Below, piece by piece: positions 45,801 to 48,800 of a stretch of 64,000 bases of DNA. How positions within the stretch are numbered: the stretch's first letter is position 1; every line of letters begins with the position of its first letter. A program made the translations under genes and the position numbers. The notes under the pieces were generated by a model. That model was not told where the DNA came from, did no database searches, and saw nothing but the letters and a program-made list of their open reading frames with translations. Source of the DNA: Phallusia mammillata (Eukaryota). The stretch covers positions 4,650,001-4,714,000 of the forward strand of contig OZ281498.1 in assembly GCA_965637545.1 (NCBI GenBank), given 5' to 3'.

Positions 45801-48800
45801 AAAACGTAAGGTCAGGAGCAGAGCTTATACGGGGTTGTAGCTTTAAAATGTGCTCTATCCATACGTATTTTAGATATCAAATTGCTGTTCTTGTTGCAAA
45901 ACACTAAAACGTACGAATTGAGGGCCACCTTAAAGCCCCCTTAAAGATTTAAAACATTATCAACAGCTTGTTTAGGGACGGAGATGACTTAACTCTACAT
46001 AACACTAAGTGAATAAATTTGTATTGCAGCTTTATTTTGTGGCGTTTTTCCTGCCAAATACCTGCCCGAAGATGCCGTGGACGTGCGCTCATATGCAGGC
46101 ACAGGTTTAACGTTTAATCCTTTACAACCGGTGAACGATTCAAGAGTTCGCATCTCAAGTCGTATAGTTGGTGCACAGCCAGCGAACATACGACAATACC
46201 CTTGGCAGGTATGTACACTGTATGGTTGAATTTGACCTTGTTTTGGAATGCTTGTGCCCTGTTTTGATTTTACTAGCTAATCTTCAGTTGTTTTGCCTGA
46301 AGCTTTGCTATTCCTTTGTGATTCAAAATCTTTTAGTTTGTTCTACTAACCGGTTTTGAAACAGCAGGCTACACATTTTTTAACGGATTCGTATGGGGCA
46401 AAATACGTTTCTTATTTGCGAGGCAAAATCTTCGTTCTTTGTGCTGTTAGCTAGTAACACAAATTAGGTTTAGGAAACAAGATTAATGCTGTCTGGTTTG
46501 CACTGAATATTTCAATGCAGTAGGACTAATTGTATTTGTGAGAACTAAACGCTTAATTGTGTTGTAAGATCCAAAACCGTTGCGGCCAAAAGTGTCATTA
46601 TTCACAACTCAAATAGTAGATAGCAGTTTTTAAGTTTGGCCAAATTATAAAACGAAACATATAAATGCATCAAGATTGTGACGTTTAATCGAGATTAATA
46701 TCAGGGTGGTTGTTTGTTGCTCGCAGAATCCAAACGTTTTTCCCGCGAATAGCAACCCAACGCCAGTTGGTTTAAGAATTGTCCAATCCCGTGTGATGGG
46801 AGGGGAAGATGCAATAGTACCGTGGCAGGTAAAATATACAAAGTTTCAATACATTAACCAGATAAAAAGGCAATTTTGAACCAATGCATAACATTTTCCT
46901 GTTTTGACTGTTGTAGCTCTTACATCATATTTGCATGCTATAGCTTACTTTTTTCATTTCGACTTACCAGAAGATTGTTGCTTTGGGCTCATTTGTTCAA
47001 ATTCAGTTTAAATTTACGCCAAATTGTCAGAAATGACATTTGTGCGATGTATGGCCTGTTACTGGTTTTCGTTGTATGACATGCATTGTTGTACCGTTTG
47101 TTCGCCAAATTCACCGCGGTACATGTTTTGACTCCAGGTCAGCCTCTGGTTAAAAGTAAAAGGTGTGAGTCGTGTGACATGCGGAGGATCCATTATACTG
47201 AGAAACTGGATATTAACAGCGGCCCATTGTACACAGGAGTAAGTTAAACAGTAATTTGGCGAAATTAGCCCCTGATTACAGTGGAAATGGTGTATAGTTG
47301 TATTCCAATTTTAAATCCAAGTGTCCTCAACTGACATTTTCTTTGTAATATAGCTGTGCAAATAAAGCCCTTAGTAATGTTTTCTTTGTAGTTTATTGTT
47401 TATCTAATAAATCAACCATGATTTAATGTTCTGGTAAATTATTTTATGGTAACATTGATGTTTTCTACTGACAGTCACATGGATGAAGAATCTTGGACAG
47501 TTTACGCGGGGACTTCGGCCTTGTCTGAACGCAATGAGTCTCCTGCCGAAAAACGCAGCGTCATTCAAATTATCCAACATGAAGATTACCCGATTGACAT
47601 GTCATATGATTATGACGTAAGCCTTATGAAGGTAATAGTCAACATTCATTGCATATTGCAGTCACACAATGTATAGCCTACGACCAGTATGTTTAAATAT
47701 TCTTGTATTGGTAGCTTGACGCGCCAATCATCTTTACTGAGGTAATTCAACCTATTTGTATTCCGCCGCAAAGTCATGAGTTTCCTGCTGGCATGAGTTG
47801 CTATGTCAGTGGCTGGGGTGCAGTGGATTCCTTTGGTAAGTTGATAAACCTGTAATTTTCATTTAACGTGTAGTTTGGCCAATATAATATCGTAAGTTAA
47901 AGGGTGACTAATTTTCTCTTAAAATAGCTTCATTTTGCAACAGTGTGCAAAATTTTTGTGCAATGACACACACGTGAGTAACGTTATATCACACAATGTC
48001 GTCCAACAATATCAGACAATAAAAAAAAATGCGCCACAAACCCTAATACCCTTGCGTACAGTTATACACCGACACATTAGGTTGGCAAGCCTGTTTCACC
48101 AAGCTTTTGGTCCAAAACTATAACCAACAAGGGCTTGCTTTCCACCCATTGTTCCGTTGTAATAAGTGTTCGCGATGCCGTTAAAACTTGCGAAATAAGG
48201 GTGCTTAAATCGTTCGACCTTCTTATTTTGCTATAGACTAACCATCACGAAAGTTGTAGCAGTTAATAACGAACACCAGTATGTTTTTAAGGCGCAACAT
48301 TATTGTGATAACAGATGTTTTCATGTACGGATTTCTCGTAGGACATTAAACAAACAGCAATAGTTCATTTTCATGGTTTACAACGGTTCGCTTTCGTTTT
48401 TGTCGATAGGAGTTTCATCACATCCGGATGTTTTGCAACACGCACAGATAGACATAATATCCGACACTTTATGCAACAGCAGTGAGTGGTTGGACGGTCT
48501 GATCACCAGTCGGATGTTGTGCGCTGGAAAAGCTCAAGGAGTAAGAGACGCCTGCCAGGTAAGAACACCGAAAATTATGTTGTCGAATTTAGCAATTGTT
48601 GGCTTAGGGCAAGGGCTAGAAAACATTGGTCCATGAGAAATTTGTAAAGAGCCACACAAAAACAATGCATTATGTAGACTTGACTTAATAAACGAAATTA
48701 GCTTGTTATTGACTATTAACAATTCTAGGTGCCAAAACAACCTCATCCATCTCTTAAAAGTTGATATTTCATTAAATGGCAGCCCACAAAACCTGCATGG

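Follow-up and report, generated by a model that had tools for sequence, protein, structure and literature searches.

Two genes encoding membrane-anchored, trypsin-like proteases of the S1 family (gene 1, 42849-49500; gene 2, 53071-56876) lie in tandem on the forward strand of the window, the 64,000-nucleotide stretch of Phallusia mammillata contig OZ281498.1 (assembly GCA_965637545.1, positions 4,650,001 to 4,714,000) that was analysed here. All positions below are those of the window unless another locus is named. In the textbook scheme, an S1 protease has one domain and undergoes a single activation cleavage, which creates a single new N-terminus. Within gene 1, two consecutive exons, designated A and B, each carry a complete activation segment ahead of a single catalytic domain. 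This two-exon observation, made in an initial annotation of the same DNA, was confirmed, and the arrangement proved to be both real and conserved in related genomes (Table 1).

Exon A is bounded by the acceptor tgtattgcag/ at 46029/46030 and the donor cag/gtatgt at 46208/46209, and exon B by the acceptor ctcgcag/ at 46726/46727 and the donor cag/gtaaaa at 46828/46829; all junctions of gene 1 are of the AG/GT type. The activation segment of exon A, designated motif 1, reads ..ISSR/ with its P1 arginine at 46161-46163 and continues for 15 residues to the end of the exon (..YPWQ). The segment of exon B, designated motif 2, reads ..VQSR/ with its P1 arginine at 46790-46792 and is followed by 12 residues. 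The positions, motifs and exit phase given for exon A in the initial annotation, and the 102-nucleotide (nt) length, symmetric phase and motif given for exon B, agreed with canonical splice sites and with the reading frame. The same was true of its proposal that either exon can be joined in frame to VSLW at 47138, as the spliced gene 1 models comprise 641 residues with exon B and 607 residues without it, each as one open frame that ends at the same terminal stop. Two small corrections were required: the entry phase of exon A is 1, with two initial nucleotides that finish the upstream codon, and exon C leaves at 47238 in phase 2. A further model exon, 1b, was placed by its resemblance to an annotated exon, ETDVPKVTTVLNQ(T), of the Styela clava relative described below.

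Table 1 Predicted features of the two protease genes. Positions are those of the window; a slash marks a splice junction or a predicted cleavage site.
Feature	Position	Strand	Description	Basis
Gene 1 exon 1	42849..43635	+	Cytoplasmic N-terminal region (Cys-rich stretch) and single transmembrane helix; donor g/gtaagt, phase 1	Open reading frame
Gene 1 exon 1b	45601..45672	+	72 nt, phase 1-1; sites ttgttcag/ and /gtaggt; frame kept	
Gene 1 exon A	46030..46208	+	Tether cysteine (LFCG), linker, first activation segment; phase 1 in, 0 out	
Gene 1 exon B	46727..46828	+	102 nt, phase 0-0, cassette candidate; linker and second activation segment	
Gene 1 exon C	47138..47238	+	VSLW first core strand through CGGS..TAAHC (His57); acceptor gactccag/; accepts exon A or B in frame	
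Gene 1 exon D	47475..47631	+	Part of catalytic domain	
Gene 1 exon E	47715..47835	+	Contains PICIP (Cys122)	
Gene 1 exon F	48410..48558	+	Part of catalytic domain	
Gene 1 exon G	49243..49500	+	Last exon	
Gene 2, tandem paralogue	53071..56876	+	557-residue model, exon layout as in gene 1	
Gene 2 exon A2	54845..55005	+	Without activation motif	
Gene 2 exon B2	55081..55191	+	Sole activation site of gene 2, KSPR/ then 12 residues	

The catalytic triad of S1 proteases (His57, Asp102 and Ser195) is intact and lies in conserved motifs of the spliced gene 1 model, and the usual S1 cysteines are present. Exons D to G (47475-49500) together hold Asp102 (DYDVSLMK), Cys122 (PICIP), Asp189 (RDACQ), Ser195 (GDSGGP) and the stop codon. 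The cysteine of LFCG at the start of exon A and Cys122 in exon E form an available tether pair, and a disulfide between them is predicted. Both activation sites, Arg/Ile-Val and Arg/Val-Met, are suited to zymogen cleavage, which is likewise predicted. Exon 1 ends in a hydrophobic stretch of 22 residues preceded by basic residues, and the protease domain is C-terminal. This type II topology was inferred from sequence, the absence of an N-terminal signal peptide being judged by eye. Pfam detected no stem module (SEA, LDLa, CUB, SRCR or frizzled) between the helix and the protease domain, which are connected by a short linker of about 65 residues. Judged by these features, the gene 1 product is a stemless, minimal type II transmembrane S1 protease of the trypsin-like (Asp189) kind, and the enzyme looks active. 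Its best matches among solved structures were type II transmembrane proteases (E-values of 1e-55 to 1e-47), the closest in sequence being matriptase, TMPRSS6 and their relatives.

Relatives were sought by a full-library search with exon A alone, which gave three meaningful matches: one protein of 676 residues and two short open frames, each consisting of exon A plus read-through, on genomic contigs (L001 and L003). The protein is isoform X1 of Styela clava LOC120333641 (RefSeq), a gene labelled uncharacterised. Its cluster also contains isoform X2, of 621 residues, and both isoforms appear in two annotation versions. In X1, ..QAAR/ and 15 further residues are followed by a 55-residue insert that carries ..VQGR/IYGGRPTTAMRFPWQVYLHA and ends as ..VQGR IYGGRPTTAMRFPWQ VYLHA, after which the core ASLWVELRGMTCGG begins. 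X2 is X1 minus exactly those 55 residues, with ..QYPWQ joined to ASLW. At the Styela locus (L004), the insert corresponds to a 150-nt phase 0-0 exon (10626-10775 of that locus) and a 15-nt micro-exon (11383-11397; ttacag/GTTTACCTTCACGCG/gtaagg), and the X2 splice runs from the donor of the exon A counterpart directly to the acceptor of the exon C counterpart. Skipping of the second segment, by exactly which the two isoforms differ, is therefore annotated in Styela. The NCBI pipeline normally places such a micro-exon only from transcript evidence, and the 15-nt micro-exon thus suggests transcript support for the Styela annotation.

The same order was recovered on the two contigs. L001 has a motif 1 segment, then ..VSPR VMGGNVAKVSWQ and the core VSLFIEGKGMRCGG, and L003 has ..VSPR IIQGEAANIAQYPWQ, then ..RRSR IIGGVSSTIGKTPWQ and the core SALFHETRGFLCGG. 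In the window, L001, L003 and Styela alike, an exon A bearing motif 1 is followed by an exon B bearing motif 2 and then by exon C, and in all four genomes exon B is open, symmetric and flanked by canonical sites, with lengths of 102, 126, 144 and 150 nt. The initial annotation had made its proposal depend on conservation of the motifs in orthologues; both motifs are kept in the three other genomes. Word-index protein searches with the Styela protein returned no more full-length relatives and no transcript-derived fragments from P. mammillata. No exact match of the older Styela X1 sequence to the contigs was obtained, and no conserved intron blocks were found around exon B in comparison with the three other loci.

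Both isoforms were compared with the S1 fold. Exons C to G tile positions 19-220 of the Pfam Trypsin profile (PF00089), exon C covering 19-44 and exons D to G 48-220; exons C, E, F and G each score above the 20.6-bit cut-off and exon D reaches 16 bits. Positions 1-18 must therefore be supplied by motif 1 or motif 2. Both Styela isoforms match positions 1-220, X2 starting at motif 1 (213.7 bits) and X1 at motif 2 (209.3 bits). When aligned with the catalytic chain of matriptase, X2 matched from residue 1 without a gap; in X1, PWQVYLHA fell on PWQVSLHA and the next five residues formed a loop insertion. The P. mammillata isoforms were scored with a neutral S1 profile built from 16 unrelated S1 proteases. 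The form without exon B scored 247.4 bits with an ungapped N-terminal segment, and the form with exon B scored 228.5 bits, its alignment having a three-residue deletion, while motif 1 of that form gave another match of 13.3 bits on its own. Motif 1 was thus the better fit to S1 profiles than motif 2. An AlphaFold2 model of the Styela X2 ectodomain was confident and had a mean predicted local distance difference test (pLDDT) value of 81.6, with block means at motif 1 of 68 (residues 41-50) and 96 (residues 51-60). The model of X1 had low confidence at both motifs and is uninformative on which motif docks, because the underlying alignment had placed the IVGG of homologues on motif 1.

The VYLHA micro-exon that accompanies the second activation exon in Styela X1 has perfect splice sites and brings a first core strand of its own, which displaces ASLWV.. 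into a loop. Nothing comparable was found between exons B and C in gene 1, gene 2, L001 or L003.

From these comparisons we consider it probable that a cassette exon arose by an old duplication of the activation exon and that its use exchanges both the activation site and the mature N-terminus. One gene probably yields two enzyme forms that differ in where they are activated and in their new ends. In an ancestor shared with at least Styela, an exon bearing the activation site and the first ~15 mature residues would have come to exist twice. A recent origin of exon B as a copy of exon A was ruled out, since the DNA similarity of the two exons is weak, and any duplication must therefore be old. 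Exon A would always be needed because the tether cysteine lies in it and because it takes the reading phase from 1 to 0; exons 1 and 1b both leave one base (phase 1), and joining either of them straight to exon B shifts the frame. Exon B, being symmetric (phase 0-0), would act as the cassette. Skipping of exon B would leave ..ISSR as the cleavage site, and the cut there would free the canonical 15-residue S1 N-terminus of a one-site zymogen. If exon B is included, cleavage would occur after ..VQSR to give a 12-residue N-terminal segment, and motif 1 would remain in a longer, disulfide-tethered propeptide. Exon B would override motif 1 whenever present, because only the segment contiguous with VSLW.. 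can form residues 16-30 of the fold; this step draws on the fold and on the Styela isoforms. The two forms may differ in activation rate, zymogen stability or activator, and the enzyme, having Asp189, could cut itself. We infer that the second exon is skipped in P. mammillata, that both forms are cleaved as described and that the forms differ in function.

According to the initial annotation, cassette use of exon B chooses the activation site and N-terminus and, through them, the upstream activator. The first part is supported by the Styela isoforms that differ by the second segment, by the full-length Trypsin matches, and by selection on motif 1 and decay of that motif in gene 2, both described below. 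The activator step gained no support. Both sites have arginine at P1, and no consistent site-specific pattern at P4-P2 was found across the species compared.

A different arrangement, which we regard as rather unlikely, is that exons A and B are both constitutive in P. mammillata, that activation always takes place at the second site, and that motif 1 is kept for some other role in the propeptide. Motif 1 could then be the first cut of a two-step activation, a decoy or competitive substrate, or, once cut, a tethered Ile-Val N-terminus lodged in the activation pocket. The existence of Styela X1 indicates that a form with both motifs is made, but Styela X2 skips the cassette, and skipping, although annotated in Styela, is a prediction in P. 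mammillata. The splice sites of exon B look strong (a pyrimidine-rich acceptor and a gtaaaa donor), which speaks for constitutive use; on the other side, motif 1 stands at precisely the distance from exon C that a genuine S1 N-terminus has, and the form without exon B is the better profile match. Finally, gene 2 works on an exon-B-type site alone, which is compatible with constitutive use, but it is also in gene 2 that motif 1 has decayed where evidently unused. The retention in gene 1 of all 15 residues to ..YPWQ matches the needs of a mature N-terminus and not those of a cleavage site alone.

Nonsynonymous (pN) and synonymous (pS) differences were compared pairwise between the four genomes over the 16 codons of motif 1. 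Values of pN were 0.05-0.27 (0.05 against L001), and pS was 0.8-1.1, near saturation, in five of the six pairs. Motif 1 was as tight as the His57 core (CGGS..TAAHC), for which pN was 0.15-0.26. At the DNA level, no match between the window and Styela was stronger than those of motif 1 (81% identity over 54 nt) and of the GDSGG exon (70% over 117 nt), which tied at the same E-value. Judged by codon comparison, motif 1 is under purifying selection at the amino-acid level in the four genomes.

Gene 2 is otherwise intact, and its transmembrane part can be aligned with that of gene 1 exon 1. Its motif 1 is unrecognisable (pN 0.46 against gene 1). In a small tree, gene 2 was sister to gene 1 (82/88) on a longer branch (0.57 versus 0.20); with this support, the inferred timing of the duplication that separated the two genes is only moderately supported. 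The pattern suggests that motif 1 was lost where it was evidently not needed and that, where kept, it is held by selection on the protein. Gene 2 is a possible case of splice-form subfunctionalisation after gene duplication, which is a known idea (PMC4417111). The likeness is that gene 2 keeps an exon-B-type segment only and gene 1 keeps both. The comparison was confined to this pair, whereas the full scheme would include a partner with only the exon-A-type form.

It is very unlikely, in our view, that exon B persists in gene 1 as a duplicate in decay or in rare use, its inclusion being splicing noise and the A-to-C form the real enzyme. Motif 2 is three residues short of the canonical segment, lowers the profile score and, with pN values of 0.20-0.45, is looser than motif 1, but it has kept R/[VI]xGG..WQ, and its pN against L001 (0.20) is well under the corresponding pS (0.69). 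Despite its changes in length, exon B has remained open and symmetric with canonical sites in four genomes; gene 2 depends on a segment of the exon-B type, and the Styela form with the cassette is annotated together with a dedicated micro-exon. That either exon is no more than intronic sequence with a fortuitous open frame is scarcely credible. A relaxed pattern for the 15-residue S1 N-terminus has an expected count of 0.02 in a simulated window and occurs once, at 46161, directly before a donor site. The two segments also keep their positions and their order in three other genomes, and an annotated protein contains both, so that all relatives would have to be mis-annotated. A stricter motif scan of the window gave no matches beyond the activation segments of the protease genes, two in gene 1 and one in gene 2.

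Several observations weigh against an alternatively used cassette derived from a duplicated exon. The Styela isoforms are predictions of an automated pipeline. Homology between exons B and A rests on the shared motif and on one weak DNA match of 13/15 nt, a level reached by 15 of 300 shuffles. Gly19, near-invariant in S1 proteases, is replaced by alanine (IVGA) in motif 1 of P. mammillata and of L001. The comparison of motif 1 between the window and Styela gave a lowish pS of 0.36, and some constraint at the RNA level may therefore act on it. Lastly, the share of sampled words of 45900-47700 that occurred in probable RNA runs was 0.21-0.22, which fits either isoform because exon lengths predict ~0.20 without exon B and ~0.24 with it. 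The word share does show that gene 1 exons are present in probable transcript assemblies.

Inclusion of both exons may, as the initial annotation had suggested as its alternative, produce a decoy or a two-step activation of the long isoform. A fuller version, which we consider quite unlikely, would have the two isoforms do more than duplicate each other and would make motif 1 a working part of the long propeptide, either as a tethered Ile-Val N-terminus or as a decoy that times the second site; one gene would then encode one-step and two-step zymogens, and the two sites might answer to different activators.

The proposed cassette was compared with known systems. Type II transmembrane serine proteases (matriptase/ST14, TMPRSS6, TMPRSS11D/E, enteropeptidase, TMPRSS13, TMPRSS2 and hepsin) have the same cytoplasmic tail, signal-anchor helix and C-terminal S1 domain. 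They also share an activation exon that reads Cys-Gly...Arg/Ile-Val-Gly-Gly...Pro-Trp-Gln and is followed by an intron, and a tether cysteine that pairs with Cys122. Gene 1 differs from them in its lack of stem domains and in its two serial activation segments, the second on an exon that can be skipped. Insect genes of the serpin-1 type have mutually exclusive alternative exons for the reactive-centre loop. There too, splicing swaps a short segment that decides how a protein of a protease system is recognised or cut, but the protein is an inhibitor whose target specificity is changed, whereas here the segment would be the protease's own activation segment.

Mutually exclusive homologous exons that arose by tandem exon duplication have been reviewed (PMC8373072). 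As in those genes, adjacent exons encode homologous versions of one structural segment, the isoforms would differ like for like, and the arrangement is old and conserved. In contrast, the upstream exon A would always be included, having the tether cysteine and a different entry phase, and exon B would be a plain cassette adjoining the core; exons A and B are not mutually exclusive, as their phases differ (1-0 and 0-0) and Styela X1 contains both copies. Polyserases and ovochymase-type proteins contain tandem complete S1 domains (PMC1435904) and likewise have more than one site of the Arg/Ile-Val-Gly-Gly type per polypeptide. Here only the first 12-20 residues are repeated, with one set of His, Asp and Ser, and each gene has one AAHC, one GDSGG and one Trypsin domain. 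A literature search found no description of a protease in which a cassette exon exchanges the activation segment, and no mention of the Styela locus tag or of the run and assembly accessions.

If the proposed cassette operates, splicing within a conserved gene design would replace the activation segment and its cleavage site and leave the rest of the enzyme and the membrane anchor unchanged. Confirmed at the RNA and protein level, gene 1 would be a natural system for studying the influence of the activation segment on zymogen stability, activation rate and choice of activator, with gene 2, which has settled on one option, as a built-in comparison. It would also illustrate clearly that a duplicated exon can serve as a cassette and not as a mutually exclusive exon. 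Should the two-step or decoy reading be true, the genes would represent an ascidian-wide splicing switch for the logic of protease activation.

Three further proteins encountered in the searches were set aside. P0003 was rejected as a relative; it is a 713-residue protein in which the N-terminal half of an S1 protease (ASRITGGSPANLGEFPYQ..TAAHC) is repeated four to five times almost without change. It is unrelated to the window gene and has the appearance of an artefact of assembly or annotation, or of read-through across a tandem array. P0001 and P0004 were not counted, as their similarity to the query is confined to its linker, in 17 stretches for P0001 and 5 for P0004.

Exon C of gene 1 has three additional residues in the loop after the first strand in comparison with L001, L003 and Styela. 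The cytoplasmic tail encoded by exon 1 contains a Cys-rich stretch (~43140-43260) that had no match in Pfam; the Styela relative has the Cys/His-rich KSCKCSCHHTHLHHHHH in the same region. This stretch is a possible metal-binding or palmitoylation module. The small phase 1-1 exons at 45601-45672 (72 nt) and 54716-54775 (60 nt), additions to what the initial annotation described, both end in ..LNQ, and in each case the next exon completes an NQT glycosylation sequon. The sequon is placed just before the tether cysteine and is common to Styela (..VLNQT).

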